This document shows, piece by piece, positions 19,796 through 63,966 of a stretch of DNA of 64,000 nt (position 1 is its first letter; every line of letters starts with the position of its first letter). Source of the stretch: Diadema antillarum (taxonomy: Eukaryota); assembly GCF_040938485.1 (NCBI RefSeq), contig NW_027271236.1, forward strand, positions 62,001 through 126,000, written 5' to 3'. Made by a program: the position numbers and the translations under genes. The notes under the pieces are model-generated. The model was not told the origin of the DNA. It was given only the letters and a program-made list of their open reading frames with translations, and ran no database searches.

Positions 19796-20026
19796 GCTAT
19801 CCCTACCATGCACCGGAGGCATACTTTCCCTACTTCAGAAAACACAACATCACAGCGATAGTCCGGCTGAACAAGAAGATCTACGACGCCAGGCGGTTCA
19901 CCGACGCCGGCTTCGACCACTACGATCTGTTCTTCATCGACGGCAGCACGCCCAGCGACGCCATCCTCCAGAAGTTCCTCACGTTATCAGAGAATGCTGA
20001 GGGAGCCCTTGCAGTCCATTGTAAAG
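19796..20026 (+). CDS. CDC14: CDC14 exon (G)[76 protein letters not shown](A)
   Basis: gatag acceptor and GTGAGG donor; 231 nt, phase 1 to 1. Contains the DGSTP acid loop and the HC of the catalytic motif. Confidence 0.98.
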
Positions 20027-24500: not shown

Positions 24501-24933
24501 CTTGAGTAGAAGATGCATGGGAATCTTCCACAAACGATAATGTTATGTATTCTATGTAGTATGATTTGGTAGTCTCGTTAATGGATGGTGATTACAAAAA
24601 GTTTACACAGCAGAGAACCTCTTGTGCTGTTTATCAATTTAATATGTATTTTACACAAACTGGATAAGAGCTAGTAATTTTTTTTGGTTATTTAATTCAC
24701 AAATAGCACACAGCATGCAAAATTTGTGCGAGAAAACCCTGCAAAATATAGCGGTGACAGTAGTGTGTCTATAACAAAGTTCTGTGATGAAATGCAGAGA
24801 TTGAGGGGATAATGCAATGAGCAAGGTTATTCTGTAGTTTGGTCATTTTATCCGACTTTGATGATATACGTCAAAACTCTGGATGACGTTAGAATTTTCC
24901 CTCCTTTTTTTCTTTGGTTGCCATGGTTTCCAG

Positions 24934-33517: not shown

Positions 33518-36155
33518 GTTGTTAATGGGCTATTGGGAATTTGACGTTTTATAATAGCATCCAATTTTATTTTTGATGCTTTTAGTTTCTATAAAGGTCA
33601 TTACCTATGTCTAATAGCAGTTATTACTCTCTTATTACTTTACATCAAATCTTCAATTCAAATCCATTACAATTGCTGACATTGATACTTTTCTTTTTGT
33701 GTACTCACATCTCTTGCAACGCTCACTCTGTTATATTTATGCCCTATGGCAGCACAAAGTATTCAGAGAACTCATAAATTGAATTTTGTGAAATCATGCT
33801 TTGATTTGCTGTTGTTATTTTTTTCTACTTTGAACAAAATATTTGATTTTGATAACAGTCCTCAAGTTCTGCGCACTTTTCTGAGGTATTGTATTTTGCA
33901 TCTCAAGTGTTTGGAAATAATTTTTCTCGTTTGCATCTTACTGACCCTCACTCTCTTAACTCACCACACTCCCTGAAAATTGATCAGCAAGTGTTGATTG
34001 GTAATTATAGTCTTGATGTAGTAGAGTGATAAACTGCAGCCAGCCTCACTGACAAAATGCTGAATAAAAGTTAGATCAAACTTGCTAACAGGCCAAACTG
34101 CCATATGTGAGAAATTTTGTCTATGCTCAACTTACAGTTATAACATTTTCCTGTCAGTGAAGAGGAACTGTGTAAAAGTGTGGAATTCCATTTGTAATTT
34201 AAGCAGAGTTTTGAATAGAATTACCCTCAAGAGTAGATTGTCAGCATAATAGTGGTAGTAGATGTCAAGTAATGGAGACCATTCCATGAGAGGCACAGTG
34301 GAGATTCCTTTAATAACCTTTAATGATGTCGTTTAAGAGATAGTTATATGTCAGTACCATCTACTAAAGACTTAACAACCACTTATAAGCACAGTGGTAA
34401 TGGGTGTGCTAGGTTAACATGATACGTCTCTATCAGCTCAGCACCCGTTCTGTTTACTTCCCAGCTCAGTGTGTCATTAGACTTTATTCTGCGTAGGACA
34501 GGGTTACGGATGAAATGAAAGGGACCTAAAATCTCAAATGAGTTCTTGTTCGACTCTTCCTGGAAAAATATCCCAATTTTATTTCAGACATAATGTCAGA
34601 CATAATGTCATACAGGAGTGCTAACACACACATTTATGAAGACATGTTTGCCTAGAACAGAAATGATTACTCAATATGCCGTTGTACAAAGAAAGAGCCC
34701 CTTACACACACACACACCAATACAAAACAAAACAAAGCAATGCAATAATGGAAGAAAGTGAGGAGATTTAGAGAAGCCTGCATCTCTACTAAAACTACAT
34801 TGTATATCTTATAAAGCTTGGGAAGGATTTATCACTAAAAGTAGAAATTATCTTGCTTGTATATTTCTTTTGAAAAGGAGCGATAGTGATGGTTACGTGA
34901 CCAGAGTCAAATTATAGCACGTAAAAAGAAAAAATGGATATTCTGATAATGCACTAATTTTGTCATTGAACAGAATGTACATATTTTTGTTTAGCTTCCT
35001 TTATTTATATGTAAAGATATTGATATATGTGGTGTATAATCTATATATCTATCAAATTCTTGCATGATGTAATATGGGATCCTGGGAGTTGACTGTAAGA
35101 ATCTCATCCCTTCAGATTTACGCTTAGTTGGATCTGAGTTTGGGCATCTGTGTTTCCTAACAGAGAGTTAAGAAAGACAAGAGTAAATGAACGGGAGAAT
35201 GTTATGTTTGAATAGTCTTGTTATTGATTATTAAGAGTAGCATGCAAGTGTGTGCTTAGTGTTTACAATATAAATGCATTTTGTATACTATTAACACGTA
35301 TACTCTCTTTCTTGCATTTAATAGAGATTTTAATGGAGAGAATGATTGTTTCTGTACACTTGAAGAAATAATGTCTTCTACTTTCACTACTCAAAAGTGA
35401 CCATAAAATTCCAAGCATGCCTTTGACGTATTTGAGATCTGTCATTAGTCACCCATAGGTTACTTGTAATCCCCCTTTGTTGGAATGCAAGTGTGTGATG
35501 TGTATAAAATTGTACAATGTCCAGTCCTAATATAACTAATGATGAACTTTACTCTGGGTTTGGAATTAATGTAGTCTAGCGCTAATCAGTGTACCAGAAC
35601 TTACAATAGACAGTTTCCCTTTTGACAATATTGCATTTGCTTTCATGGCAAAAGGCAGACACAGTAGGTAAGTTATTGCTAGCCATTTTTAAATCCACAG
35701 ACATGTTTCCATGTCACATAGTGTTCTGCTTCCAGTGAACTATGTTTCTGACATCCCAACACACTAGCAGTATGTGTAGTAAATATCAGTATGGCTCTAT
35801 TTGCTCATTATGAACAAGAAACATGAACAAGAAATGGTACAATGCGTGGATTTGAGTTAGAACTTAATTCTTGTTACCTACTTTCATGACCTTTACCTCA
35901 ATTGGTGTTTGTCAACAGGAATTATCAAGTACTATTTTGTCTGGAAATGGTTTTGCAAATGGCGTAACATGAATATTTTTGTCTTACCCCCTCCCCCATT
36001 TCTCAACCATGCCTTTCACTATTTTATAATCCCCAAACATACCTTAAAACCTTTGTCCCCTTGTTGATTTCATATACCTTCCAACATACACCACACACCC
36101 CTCATTGTATCATCTTTACATCACTTATACCCCTGCTTCCCTTCTGAACGATGAT

Positions 36156-36169: not shown

Positions 36170-36647
36170 AGGAGCAAAGCAAGTAGTAAAAAGTAAGAAT
36201 GAATGTTTGGATTGTCACGTCTAGATTCTGCTGTGGTATGTCACAAAGGGCAAAAATGGTTGGTTGCTGTGCAAGTTGTAAAAGTTTGCTGCTTCATATT
36301 AATACAGCATCTTGCTTGGTGAGCCTTCATTGTTTGTTTAAATTCTGTTGTTTGTGTATGCATTTCATTGCTGGTTTGCATTTATCTTCGCTCTACACAT
36401 TATTGGCAGTTTTAAGATTTAGGAGAGCAAAATTGTATATTGCCACCAGAAAAACAGTATTGTCACAATTTCTGTACCATTAACCCTAAAATGGCTGGGG
36501 GGGGGGGGGGGGATGGGATCTGCCTTCCCCTGATTTAGCATAGCCAAAAAGGCCCGGCCTGATTGGGGATAACATATACAAAACCTACTGGTTGTTAGAC
36601 TGGTCTTCTTAATGAATCCTCTATCATGTTTATCTATCTATAGTTAC

Positions 36648-39041: not shown

Positions 39042-39167
39042 GATTTCCTCAGCCACAACCTCTGCGACCTCTCCTGCCAAATCTTCCAAGGCCATCCCGT
39101 CCACCCACGTGTCCAGTGTGCGGCGGTCAACCAGGCACTCTGCGGCTGCAAACTCAGCCCTCAAAAG
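39042..39167 (+). CDS. CDC14: CDC14 Ser/Thr-rich tail exon (R)ISSATTSATSPAKSSKAIPSTHVSSVRRSTRHSAAANSALK(S/R)
   Basis: Long pyrimidine tract plus cag acceptor, GTAAGA donor; 126 nt, phase 2 to 2, open in the expected frame. Confidence 0.87.
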
Positions 39168-44403: not shown

Positions 44404-44538
44404 GCACTAATAGCTAGTGGCAGGTTGAGATATCTCGAGGCCAACTTAGCCAACCACCCAAGGAGATACATATACATGTACGACCCAGGACAGCCTGTCT
44501 ACCCAGATTATGTAAACTCCCAGTTTTGTGTCTTTGTG
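44404..44538 (+). CDS. CDC14: Candidate CDC14 cassette exon ALIASGRLRYLEANLANHPRRYIYMYDPGQPVYPDY(VNSQFCVFV)
   Basis: Pyrimidine tract, ctaac branch-like motif near 44344, aag acceptor at 44403. Donors at 44512 (GTAAAC, weak) or 44539 (GTACGC) both give phase 0 to 0. Confidence 0.45.
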
Positions 44539-44725: not shown

Positions 44726-44960
44726 ACTGTCTTTCCTCATTACACTCGTCTTTGGTTACATAGCCCTCTCGCTCGGCACTGTATACTTTGTGTTTCAGAA
44801 GGTCAGCCTCATATCTGTGGCAAAGCATTATTATCACCGTTTCATTATTGGCTTGTTTGCAGCTTCTTGCTTGGTGTCAGATGTTGTACTGAAGTTAATT
44901 CCGTTGTTTGTCTCAGGTATGAATGCAGGTATGGCTAGAGAACTGACTAAGAGGAGATGA
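44726..44960 (+). CDS. CDC14: Candidate hydrophobic alternative CDC14 exon (R)LSFLITLVFGYIALSLGTVYFVFQKVSLISVAKHYYHRFIIGLFAASCLVSDVVLKLIPLFVS(GMNAGMARELTKRR*)
   Basis: ttttttcccccattctgtag acceptor. Phase-2 entry matches the donor at 39167. 77 further sense codons run to TGA 44958-60. Strong donors at 44917 (cag|GTATGA) and 44929 (cag|GTATGG), both phase 1. Confidence 0.62.
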
Positions 44961-47311
44961 AAACAATCTAACCTTGCCTGGAAAGCTTTGCTGCAGTGAA
45001 ATCGTACATTTGCTGCCTAAACTTTAGGGAGATGAGGCAAACAGTAGTGTTGAAATTTTGAAACAAAATGAAATGAAAGAATTAAAGTCAAAATTGTTAG
45101 TTGAGTCCTATCATAGAAGGCTCCCAGTTGATTGATGTATTGTTGCTTTTTAAACCCAAATTTAGCAGTTTCAGTACTAGATTCATCAGAAGGTGCAAGC
45201 AGTAGTTTTAGGAAGCTGGAACCCCGTCACCAGAGAAGTGGCTTTCAAGCATGGCCACGTGATCATGTAATCATGCTTCAGCCCCCACTCCCACAAAAAA
45301 AAGAAAAGATAAAAAGAAGAAAACTTAACAGACAGTTGTCAGAGGTATACGTTTTCAAGCTGCCAAGAGGGCCATTCATCTCTGTGTATGTTCCAGATTT
45401 TGTTCATATGATTTAAGAATGTGTTTTCCATGATTGTTTGCTAGAAATCAGTAAACATTAGAAGATATAATTTTCCAGCCAAGCCTTCAGGTAGAAAAGA
45501 AAATTCAGTCAGTTGTTATTCTGTATGATAGACAGAAATAGACTGGAACACTTTTCTTTTGTGCTTCTGAATAGGAACAAAGGTCAGAGGTCAAGAGTTA
45601 TGAATTTTATCTGACATGAATAAAGGGTCGCGTGTGTAGGAGAATGGTTAGTGACTGACTGCATGAGATGGCAGAGGCAATCCAGTGGCTGTGTGTGTAG
45701 AATTGTTATCGTTGTGTTTTTTCATCTATCTGTGTGCGTGCAAAGTGTTGATCTTGGTATCTTGAATTCTGTTTCAGTTGTCAAATCTTGAATATTGTGA
45801 TTAGTTGGAGCTGTCCTGTTAATTTTTGCTAGCCCTACTCAACCTGTTTGTCTTGACTGTGCAAGAGACTGCTGTATGCTAATATTTCTGCTACCAGAAA
45901 TATTACTGTGAGGTGGCCCCTTACATGTACATGCTTTCCGTACTGCTCCTTTCCTTTTGTGGACAATGCAGGCCTCGCGCCGATCACGGGTTGCTCCCGC
46001 CATTTGCCGCTGCTACGAAATGGTCCAAGTTTGGTAAAAGAGGCACGGCTTGCCTTGCATGGCAACTGCATGCATGAAGCTCAGCTGACATGAGAAAGGC
46101 TTGCACTGTACATGTGTGTTTTACAACGAGTTGTTCTCACACATCGGTTGAGCATGCTTCCCCAGTTTTTTCTTTAAATAGGAAATGGTGCATTACATGT
46201 AACCATACATGTTTTCATATATTACTGACAAATTTATGAAGTGTCCATGAATGCCTCTCACATATTCTAATGTGCTCATGTCCGTGGAAGTGCATGGCCA
46301 CTTTTTATTGTCACATAAGAATTATGCCTTCAACAGTTATGAAATAATCTGCCCTTTTGAGAATGTGAGCTCTTTCTTTTCTTTAAAGCCTGATACTTCT
46401 TTAGTAAGCATACATTGCTCCTTTATTCTCTGTTAAACATTTACAATGAGTGTTCTTACATATGATTTTTTTGTCCAAAGATTTTTGCTTATGAGAAAAA
46501 GAGGAAATGACATGCTACCTACAATGCATTTGTCTATGGAACTCTTCTCAAGTATTTGGATGAATGAATTTGATTCTGTTTTCTGAATTGGAGTTCCCGG
46601 GGTTCCCTTATTTCAAAGAAGGCCAAGCATTTGATGGAGGTTTAAATGGGAAGTGATACATGTACATGTATGCAGCAATTTGAAGAAGTAATTATTTTCC
46701 ATTGAGTTCCAAACTACATTGTATTCTTGTTGATGATCACAAGATCACAAGTATTGTGTCTACTCTCTCTATTTCACAATAAGTTGCAGAATTTCATTTA
46801 AGCTAAAATTAGATGCCAGTGATTTATTTTGCCCATCATTTTTTATTTTTTTTTATTTCATGGCCCTGTAAATCTATTCTCAAAATTGGATGTATGCATG
46901 TCGATTCAACCTTGAGATTCTGCTTAAGTTGATTTAGTCATTCTTGAATGTGCAATCCTTACAGTATATGATTTGCTTCTTTTTTTTTCAGCTATTGTAC
47001 CGATTCATCAACACAAATCTCTTGATTTACCTTGCTTTGAAGGAAATGCAAACAGAATAGTCAATCCTTCTATTATGTCACTCATCAATTTTCCATTGTC
47101 ATTAATGATCATCCCTAACACAGAATTTACTCCATTTAATATGATCCACTTTGTACTATTCTGACATGCAGTTGTTCAGTCAATAAGTATCTGTGTGTGT
47201 GTGTGTGTGTATGTGTATGTATGTATCCAAACCTATCCAACTTTTGATAATGAAACCATTTCGATTGTGATCTGAAACCAGAGAGTTGAAATGCCCGTCA
47301 TATCCTCCCAG

Positions 47312-47373
47312 GTAATCCAACAGTTATACTCCAGCACAACCCGAGACAAAGTATATTCTGTCTCGTACCCGGG
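47312..47373 (+). CDS. CDC14: Candidate frame-switching cassette exon VIQQLYSSTTRDKVYSVSYP(G); may start at 47282 (adds RVEMPVISSQ)
   Basis: cctcccag acceptor and gg|GTGAGT consensus donor at 47374. 62 or 92 nt, phase 0 to 2, no stop codons. Confidence 0.4.
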
Positions 47374-49334: not shown

Positions 49335-51030
49335 GATGTGATGTGATTTTTTTTTTCCTTTAGTGTAGTTGCATGATTAGTTCCCTTGAAAACTTGCTCC
49401 CTCCCTCAGAAAATGCAAGCCACTTCTGCTTTGTTTTGTGTGTGTTTTTCATTTTTTTAAATTCAGTCTGAATCTGCATGAAATGGGTGACCCTTCAGGT
49501 CTTACCGCGAAGGGTCATAGGTCAGGGGACACGTGAATGATGACAAACCAGGTGTCACTTGATTGGTCTCTAGTTAGGCATCACCTTATGGCTCACTAGT
49601 CGAGTGTCCCCTATTGGCTCACTTGTTAAGTGTCATTTGATTAGTCACCAGCCATACGTCTGTCACTTGAGATTACTGAAGTACAGTGTAGCTCTTGTGA
49701 GCAAGCTTGTCAACTCTGTTGAGTTGGTTTGTGGATAACATTGACCATTCGAAATGTGTAGCTTGCACAAATTGCCAAATGGAGCAACCCTTTGCATGTT
49801 TACGTGTGAATTGATATGATTGCTCGGATTCTCTTTTGTTTTTGTTTAAATGCTCAAAGCATCTTCCAGTTGGCTTTGAAAAATGAACTGTATCTGATGT
49901 CAATATCCCTTTCAGACTCAGCTGGATGTTAAAACTCATTTACACAACTTAAGTCATCATTAAAATTGCAGTGAGTGCATATCTGTTTGATGTTCTCATG
50001 ATAATTTTGCAAATTACAGCTGCAACATTGCCCATCGATTATTATTTTTTCTCTCTCCTCTATTTTAATGACTGTTCCTGCAAGTTGCAATTGATCATTG
50101 CCTTGCCTCCAAGTTTATTTTTCTTCCAGTTTTCATATGTGTCATCTACATTCAATATTTATCTTCATTCAATATTTATTTCTTCATTTCAGCTACAAGA
50201 TTCTGCTGCCATTATACACTTTTTGTTTTCCTCGTTTGAGGTCATTTCAGCATTCTTCTTTACGCAGCTTCAAGACATGTCATTCTCTTTTTTTAAAATC
50301 TCTCCTTGTGCCGCATTGCATCTCTTTGACTAATGTCAGACATACCTTTTGATTTTTTTTTTACACGATTCCTCAGCCGTTTCTCTGTATTCATTTATTC
50401 ATTTATGCTTTATCATAAGCACAATGTAACATATTCACATGCCATCCAACTGAGTGATTGGCAAGTACAAGAAAATGTCATTTCCAGGCATGATTGATGT
50501 GCTGTCAGTGTACTCAGTTCCTTTAAAGATGCACCTTTAATACAGAAGCATGTAACTTATTATCATTCTTCTTTTTTTTTTCATTTCTTTTCTACTGAAA
50601 AAGATGTTGATTTGTTTTTATACTGAAAAAAAAAAAATTTAAAATTGGTAAAATCTGTTGTTTTTAGTGAAATCATGTCTCAGAGCCAACTAGGAGAAGT
50701 TGTGTTTTATTTGTGCTCTGCTGTGATTGACCAGTAAAAGCTACATTGTACAATGTGTATATGCCTCAAGATTAAGTTGTGAAAAGACATTAAAAGTATG
50801 TGCATTTGAGGTTAGATCGAAGTAGAAAATGTGCTGCATATCACAAGTAAGCACTTTCAACAGAACATATCAGTAATATGTGAATGGGCCCAAGAAGTGG
50901 CCTATGTATTGCATTTATCAGAATTATTTTGGAAATTCTGTAGCATCAATGAACTAGAGTATGATAATATTAAGAGGCTAACTGAAGTATTTTTTTTCTT
51001 TCTTTTCATGTTTTTCTCACCATGCCACAG

Positions 51031-51110
51031 TCGTACAAGCCCTCGTATTCATTCTACTAAGTCGGCAGCGCTTCGCTGATCCTGATCCCGTGACCCGTCT
51101 CCTCTCCTAA
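51031..51110 (+). CDS. CDC14: CDC14 terminal exon: frame 0 SYKPSYSFY* (stop 51058-60); phase 2 (S)RTSPRIHSTKSAALR* (stop 51077-79); phase 1 (V)VQALVFILLSRQRFADPDPVTRLLS* (stop 51108-10)
   Basis: Very strong pyrimidine tract plus ccacag acceptor at 51030, followed by a GC/CpG-rich block. Frame 0 and phase 2 peptides resemble the human CDC14A (SLQSEYVHY*) and CDC14B (SLSISRTKTVLR*) termini (recalled). Confidence 0.82.
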
Positions 51111-51615
51111 GCGTTCCCTCCACTCCTCCTTCACCCTTGCTGTGGCCTTCCAGACAATGACGACGAGGAACAAGACTCGCGTTCACACATCACACAATCT
51201 TCTCAGGAATTTTGATGGAGAGAGTTCACACTCTGACAAGGATTTCAGAGAAAGAGAGAAAAAAAAACAACAACTTTTTCACATCTTCTTTCCTACTCGC
51301 TGATGTATTCTATGCCCAAAGTGCCTTGTGAATGTTCTCAGAGTAGAACAGCTGAACACCATTGACTTGTATATGTCCTTCTGTCGGGTTCGTTGTCCCC
51401 TGTTTTACTAGATCTTTCTGCAAACTTTTATTTCAGCTCATAGCCTTTCTATTTAATTTTTGCCTTTTTATATATGCTCTGTACATAGTAGATTAAGTTA
51501 TGATTTTTAATGGGAGACCTGAGCTAATTTATCAGCCTTACGTATTCTCTTTCTGAAGTCCTTAATTTTTTCCCCTTTATTGTGCCAGGATGTTTTTAGT
51601 TGAATACATCCATGT

Positions 51616-51621
51616 AATAAA
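51616..51621 (+). other. First AATAAA I found downstream of the CDC14 stops (candidate poly(A) signal)
   Basis: gtAATAAAtgtac; the true 3' end may be much further downstream. Confidence 0.3.

Positions 51622-63536: not shown

Positions 63537-63966
<430 letters not shown>

Follow-up and report, generated by a model that had tools for sequence, protein, structure and literature searches.

The C-termini of CDC14A and CDC14B are usually regarded as unrelated, poorly conserved and disordered, and CDC14A is tied to deafness (DFNB32) and male infertility. A window of 64,000 nucleotides from the sea urchin Diadema antillarum raises the question of whether both kinds of tail can come from one exon, and from how many of its frames. 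A first-pass annotation had proposed that a single CDC14 gene that predates the vertebrate duplication makes A-type, B-type and membrane-type C-termini by reading its last exon in up to three frames, and that the vertebrate paralogues later partitioned these frames. We find that position 51031 very probably opens the terminal exon of the single Diadema CDC14 gene, and that this exon is, on comparative sequence evidence, an alternatively spliced dual-coding region.

The window carries, on its + strand and with most of the gene inside it, what its sequence identifies as a CDC14 dual-specificity phosphatase. Catalytic exons at approximately 11.4–26.2 kb encode the HCKAGLGR active-site loop, an HC(X)5R motif formed across the junction between the exon ending near 20007 (..GALAVHCK) and the exon at 24933, and the D. 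setosum orthologue (P0272) has the paired DSPn and DSPc domains (PF14671 and PF00782). Catalytic exons and tails both match CDC14 proteins. Exon bodies align with Diadema proteins in HSPs of 94–100% identity, with mismatches where HSP ends overrun into introns; the introns are 85–92% identical to those of the D. setosum locus (L001). The spliced window exons reproduce D. antillarum RefSeq isoform X7 (115 of 115 residues), as well as isoforms X1 and X5 as far as the next cassette junction. The Diadema lineage split off before CDC14A and CDC14B arose by duplication in vertebrates. Another contig of D. antillarum has a second CDC14 model (P0368) with a one-residue difference in its VIQQLY cassette (TTQDKVY versus TTRDKVY), which suggests a haplotig or a recent duplicate in the assembly. 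The window also contains a run of 132 N at 561–692 and, downstream of CDC14 on the same strand, a Gln/Asn-rich open frame at 63547–63966.

The long disordered C-terminal region is split among small exons and reaches 51 kb. Two of these are in-frame micro-exons that jointly add PQVLRTFLRSKASSK to the disordered part of some isoforms:

33859–33885, + strand: in-frame micro-cassette of 27 nt (PQVLRTFL), present in D. antillarum X1 (P0372)
36172–36192, + strand: in-frame micro-cassette of 21 nt (SKASSK)

The acceptor of the terminal exon, a polypyrimidine tract with AG at 51029–51030, lies directly before 51031. From this position all three frames read as the first-pass annotation had given them: SYKPSYSFY in frame 0 (A; stop at 51058–51060), RTSPRIHSTKSAALR in frame +1 (B; stop at 51077–51079) and VQALVFILLSRQRFADPDPVTRLLS in frame +2 (C; stop at 51108–51110). 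When the exon is read in frame B, base 51031 completes a split codon. The shared core TACTAAG does give Y-stop or T-K, depending on the frame. The parts of the exon are as follows:

51031–51060, + strand: coding part in frame A, SYKPSYSFY and stop TAA; the same nine residues end D. setosum X1 (P0272) and D. antillarum X5 (P0376)
51032–51079, + strand: coding part in frame B, RTSPRIHSTKSAALR and stop TGA; 15 of 15 residues identical in four sea urchins
51033–51110, + strand: frame C reading, VQALVFILLSRQRF..., rejected as coding
51080–51616, + strand: 3′ untranslated region up to the first AATAAA (51616), containing the frame C stretch; the transcript 3′ end is predicted from a polyadenylation-signal scan

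Frames that stay open for 9, 15 and 25 codons are within what chance allows, so comparative data are needed to decide which of them are used. A search of 38–56 kb against Rfam gave no match, and a known RNA family is therefore not the reason for the conservation of the last exon.

The reading phase of the terminal exon is predicted to depend on two upstream non-triplet cassettes. The exons concerned are these:

39042–39167, + strand: constitutive-type exon of 126 nt in the disordered region (..SPAKSSK..RRSTRHSAAANSALK); 42 of 42 residues identical to D. antillarum P0373
41171–41270, + strand: non-triplet cassette of 100 nt (SVRISKEYSTGHNAGDYTTSTTSSSLKYTRSTP); inclusion alone gives phase 0 and frame A, skipping gives frame B
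45972–46033, + strand: alternative cassette of 62 nt (ASRRSRVAPAICRCYEMVQV) with an AG acceptor and a GTAAAA donor; tblastn E = 1e-9 to the S. purpuratus/L. variegatus cassette
47312–47373, + strand: non-triplet cassette of 62 nt (VIQQLYSSTTRDKVYSVSYPG, VIQQLY...), present in D. antillarum X1–X4

We assembled and translated every combination of real exons into 51031. The change of frame comes from cassette lengths of 100 nt (1 mod 3) and 62 nt (2 mod 3), and the phases are those that the earlier reading had assigned: exon 39042–39167 ends on two bases of a codon and leads into frame B when spliced straight to 51031, and the 100-nt exon ends in phase 0. Inclusion of the 100-nt exon alone would open the terminal exon in phase 0 and yield the A tail, SYKPSYSFY. 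If it is skipped, the last exon would be entered one base later and yield the B tail (product ..ALK-S-RTSPRIHSTKSAALR), and this predicted skipping route is annotated in D. antillarum X6/X7 and L. variegatus X9. The same B frame would be reached when the 100-nt exon is joined by one 62-nt cassette: with 47312–47373 the 162 added nucleotides restore phase 2, so that the terminal exon is read in frame B, and 45972–46033 placed after the 100-nt exon also shifts the assembled product to frame B. Immediate stops result if both 62-nt cassettes are included, or if 47312–47373 is used without the 100-nt exon.

The A and B stops fall 30 and 49 nt inside the last exon. Because they lie in the last exon, both mRNAs should escape nonsense-mediated decay. 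Cassette 45972–46033 is annotated in S. purpuratus and L. variegatus and absent among the Diadema RefSeq isoforms listed; it probably represents an unannotated Diadema isoform. Annotations of D. antillarum and/or D. setosum cover every other assembled A or B product. Read-through of the donor of this cassette gives W-stop, and other urchins show ..VQVW-stop forms. Separately, an alternative exon conserved in all four urchins (LIASGRLRYLEANLANHPRRYIYM) lies at 44407–44478 and matches the alternative terminal exon of L. variegatus X4 (..GKLQYLDSRLAYQPRRYIYM-stop); in Diadema its frame continues beyond the M.

The isoforms considered here are RefSeq predictions (XP_), and use of both frames is accordingly known at the level of annotation. 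At that level the isoforms assembled from the window coincide with D. antillarum RefSeq isoforms that have A and B tails. Both tails are also annotated in D. setosum, S. purpuratus, L. variegatus, sea stars (Asterias and Patiria), a brittle star (Amphiura), a sea cucumber (Apostichopus), the acorn worm Ptychodera and three amphioxus species (Branchiostoma). Among annotated proteins, a crinoid has the B tail only and Saccoglossus the A tail only. Both inclusion and skipping of the 100-nt exon are annotated in the two Diadema species, S. purpuratus, L. variegatus, Asterias, Patiria, Ptychodera and Branchiostoma, and homologous VIQ/MIQQLY cassettes occur in every echinoderm class sampled and in hemichordates. 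Several A-type and B-type proteins were found on Logan contigs of 2–3 kb; such contigs are too short for introns, and the tailed sequences on them must be spliced transcripts.

At the DNA level we compared seven species: the window, D. setosum, S. purpuratus, L. variegatus, Asterias amurensis, Ptychodera flava and the bonefish Albula (a cdc14a-type gene). In each, frame 0 of a single genomic exon with a good acceptor upstream gives the A tail, and frame +1 gives the B tail. The A stop occupies one shared alignment column in 8 of the 8 sequences compared. An alignment of last-exon nucleotides thus has frames A and B conserved, and both are annotated, across the species compared. Annotated isoforms and genomic exons together bear out the proposal that one terminal exon gives a Tyr-ended A-type and a basic, ...LR-ended B-type C-terminus by choice of frame.

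Splicing that breaks the triplet is frequently noise, and Gnomon annotates many combinatorial isoforms (27 for Ptychodera). It could be argued on these grounds that frame A alone matters and that B-frame transcripts are tolerated by-products, spared decay by their last-exon stop. We consider this very unlikely, because the 15 residues of the B tail are identical in four sea urchins despite five silent changes in the non-overlapping codons, recognisable B tails (R..R.H/T.T[KR]....[LI]R-stop) extend from molluscs to vertebrates, CDC14B has B as its only tail, and frame B is reached by two independent splice routes and two different 62-nt cassettes. The pattern of substitution points the same way. 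Across the gene, the window and S. purpuratus share the amino acid at 347 codons, of which 147 (42%) differ silently; the corresponding figure for the window and L. variegatus is 48%. In the 30-nt overlap, by comparison, 0 of 9 conserved codons differ silently from S. purpuratus (0.58^9 = 0.007), and its one substitution replaces S by T in frame A but is synonymous in frame B. Beyond the overlap, K, S, A, A and R of frame B each have a silently changed codon relative to S. purpuratus, no residue is replaced, and the B stop codon differs too. This pattern is the signature expected of a protein-coding B frame together with a doubly constrained overlap.

Conservation is thus seen in the B residues, in the overlap and in the A tail, but the last is not independent of B: frame A lies wholly inside frame B, so selection on A is not cleanly separable from selection on B. 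The support for frame A is the conservation of a Tyr-ended tail across phyla, from a brachiopod and molluscs to vertebrates.

The third frame fares differently. The first-pass annotation had a hydrophobic exon starting at 44726 enter the terminal exon in phase 1, so that frame C would yield a membrane-type CDC14 and the exon would be triple-coding:

44726–44928, + strand: proposed hydrophobic exon, rejected as intron on the basis of D. setosum indels and background identity

Frame C is open for 25 codons with a hydrophobic run at its start, and vertebrate CDC14B and CDC14C do possess a hydrophobic-tailed isoform, from a separate exon. There is also a route through real exons, with the 100-nt exon skipped and 45972–46033 included, that reaches frame C free of stops in both Diadema species; it stops after 7–8 codons in S. 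purpuratus and L. variegatus. The 44726 feeder, however, is an intron. In D. setosum an 18-nt deletion removes its acceptor and first 4 bases, a further 2-nt deletion and a 1-nt insertion fall inside the reading, and the peptide is scattered over three frames, with an identity of 88.7% that equals the intron background. Searching S. purpuratus and L. variegatus with the 44726 peptide by tblastn gave no match, whereas three real alternative exons were found in the same way. The conserved exon 44407–44478 sits approximately 250 nt upstream of this rejected candidate.

Frame C itself diverges fully after the B stop. Past that point it cannot be aligned and has neither similarity nor a common stop in S. 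purpuratus/L. variegatus, Asterias or Ptychodera, and in Albula it reads PSV-stop, ending at codon 4. S. purpuratus and L. variegatus differ in it by 3 synonymous and 6 non-synonymous changes, among them the loss of its stop. The initial VQALVFILL, nine residues, is fixed by what A and B require of these nucleotides. None of the >150 isoform tails inspected uses frame C. We searched the window and six loci by tblastn with two vertebrate CDC14B/CDC14C hydrophobic tails (..WLLAMLVSTLCSIVIWWIVCGSLLPSLLFCLDGLR.) and found nothing below E = 0.02 and no match in a consistent place or frame; the best E bearing on frame C was 0.15, in the wrong frame, and homology of the 44726 reading to the vertebrate CDC14B hydrophobic tail is rejected. 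GC-rich sequence does run past the first two stops, as had been noted, but it continues for approximately 80 nt beyond the third (GC 0.56 for 51111–51190), and the whole 3′ untranslated region is approximately 96% identical to that of D. setosum well beyond all three stops. GC-richness is therefore no coding mark of frame C, and comparison within Diadema is uninformative on this frame, for which camarodont urchins are needed. With neither a real splice path to the third phase nor conservation of the third frame, triple coding is less probable still than splicing noise and can be set aside.

Dual coding in frames A and B, the reading that we favour, extends to vertebrates. The human tails given in the first-pass annotation agree in kind with the vertebrate sequences, in which CDC14A ends ...SLQSEYVQY and CDC14B ...SPSISRTKTVLR. 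In the Albula cdc14a terminal exon the same DNA reads SLQSEYVQY-stop and PFSLNMFNTKGTTLR-stop. The common form of CDC14A ends ..SRSIPSLQSEYVQY, and B-type CDC14A isoforms ending ..NLK-SPFSLNMFSTKALLLR are found in Crocodylus (X2), Chelonoidis (X3), Podarcis (X6), a caecilian and many fish cdc14ab. CDC14B of mammals, birds, reptiles and amphibians ends ..S[IV][SP]RT[KR]TVLR, a B-type tail, and the Tyr motif ends none of approximately 115 CDC14B tails. The kakapo CDC14B exon has QPIHPKG-stop in frame A, with the stop in the ancestral column and the motif gone. The A and B tails of vertebrates thus appear as two frames of a homologous exon. The proposed partition of frames between the paralogues holds for CDC14B, which lost the A reading, but not for CDC14A, which retains both tails; the split after the vertebrate duplication appears to have been asymmetric, with CDC14A keeping both frames and CDC14B only B. 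The acceptor of the kakapo CDC14B terminal exon is a tandem CAGCAG (NAGNAG; L007, 39541–39546), in keeping with bird isoforms that have either two Ser or one at this point (..LKSSQS.. versus ..LKSQS..).

Outside deuterostomes, molluscs, a brachiopod and annelid-type sequences have both A-type tails (..STYPQY, ..ALPYY and ..SSYSSY) and B-type tails (..RSVPHTRTSKPTVIR and ..VPLTRSTKASLIR). Shifting by one base turns YPQY-stop into TRSTK and YTNY-stop into TRTTK, both of which match B tails of related species, and from this codon compatibility of tails from related species we infer an overlap in protostomes. The overlap appears to be old, on DNA-level evidence from echinoderms, a hemichordate and teleost cdc14a and on protein-level evidence from amphioxus and tetrapod CDC14A. 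The 30-nt A/B overlap was probably already present in the bilaterian ancestor. If so, it ranks with the oldest known dual-coding regions that arise by alternative splicing and exceeds the age of jawed vertebrates, at which current surveys stop, and the unlike C-termini of human CDC14A (..EYVHY) and CDC14B (..RTKTVLR) are two frames of one exon.

On this evidence the extreme C-termini of CDC14 would be two deeply conserved short motifs in overlapping frames, switched by the 100-nt and 62-nt cassettes. The tails make up 9–15 residues of a disordered region. By analogy with the 3′ splice isoforms of human CDC14B, they most likely serve as short linear motifs through which a phosphatase that is the same in all other respects is localised or binds its partners, and the A/B switch offers a testable handle on such isoform-specific behaviour. 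Predicted isoforms indicate that vertebrate CDC14A makes a B-type protein too. For annotation, frame-shifting CDC14 isoforms should not be written off as noise, and a single variant inside the overlap would alter two proteins together.

Human CDC14B has the 3′ splice isoforms CDC14B1, B2, B3 and CDC14Bpar, and its C-terminus decides between the nucleolus, nuclear speckles and microtubules (Rosso et al. 2008, PMC2422853); that study does not describe frame sharing with CDC14A. The Diadema gene resembles it in that 3′-terminal alternative splicing provides one phosphatase core with different short C-termini, and the tetrapod CDC14B tail (...S[IV][SP]RT[KR]TVLR) corresponds to the B-type reading. 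CDC14B differs in having no A reading (QPIHPKG-stop in the kakapo, and no Tyr-ended isoform seen), and its hydrophobic isoform has a separate exon and stop of its own rather than a third frame of the last exon. Vertebrate CDC14A, of which the 623-residue form ends SLQSEYV[QH]Y and exons 11–15 are alternatively spliced (PMC12796106), is closer: the same exon is read in two frames, as SLQSEYVQY-stop (A) and (S)PFSLNMFSTKALLLR-stop (B), with B entered from the ..NLK exon when the downstream exons of the disordered region are skipped. Unlike the Diadema gene, it has a longer disordered region and further alternative terminal exons (..VSSQT.. forms), and both of its tails have drifted in sequence.

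Ancient alternatively spliced dual-coding 3′ exons of human genes have been surveyed (bioRxiv 10.64898/2026.05.28.727796; PMC13160074; PMC13247117). The texts of these surveys do not discuss CDC14, although the supplementary lists of two could still contain CDC14A; the only CDC14A entry that we found in the dual-coding literature is a different, NMD-sensitive cassette far upstream. In the literature searched we found no paper that calls the CDC14 terminal exon dual-coding or links the A and B tails, so the earlier remark that this arrangement was undescribed stands for the shared dual-frame origin, but the isoforms themselves are in RefSeq for many species. Triple-coding regions, the kind first proposed here, are reported in CCSER2 and SH2B1 (bioRxiv 10.64898/2026.05.28.727796) and SRD5A1 (PMC13352861); the third frame of CDC14, by contrast, fails every test of conservation. 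As in the surveyed dual-coding exons, upstream non-triplet splicing shifts the frame of a shared CDC14 exon, the C-termini are unrelated and both frames are constrained, although the CDC14 overlap is only 30 nt. Dual-coding 3′ exons that arise by non-triplet splicing are a recognised class, to whose catalogue the CDC14 terminal exon adds an unusually old case: the oldest age class of the surveyed human exons is jawed vertebrates, whereas the CDC14 overlap appears older than the deuterostome–protostome split.
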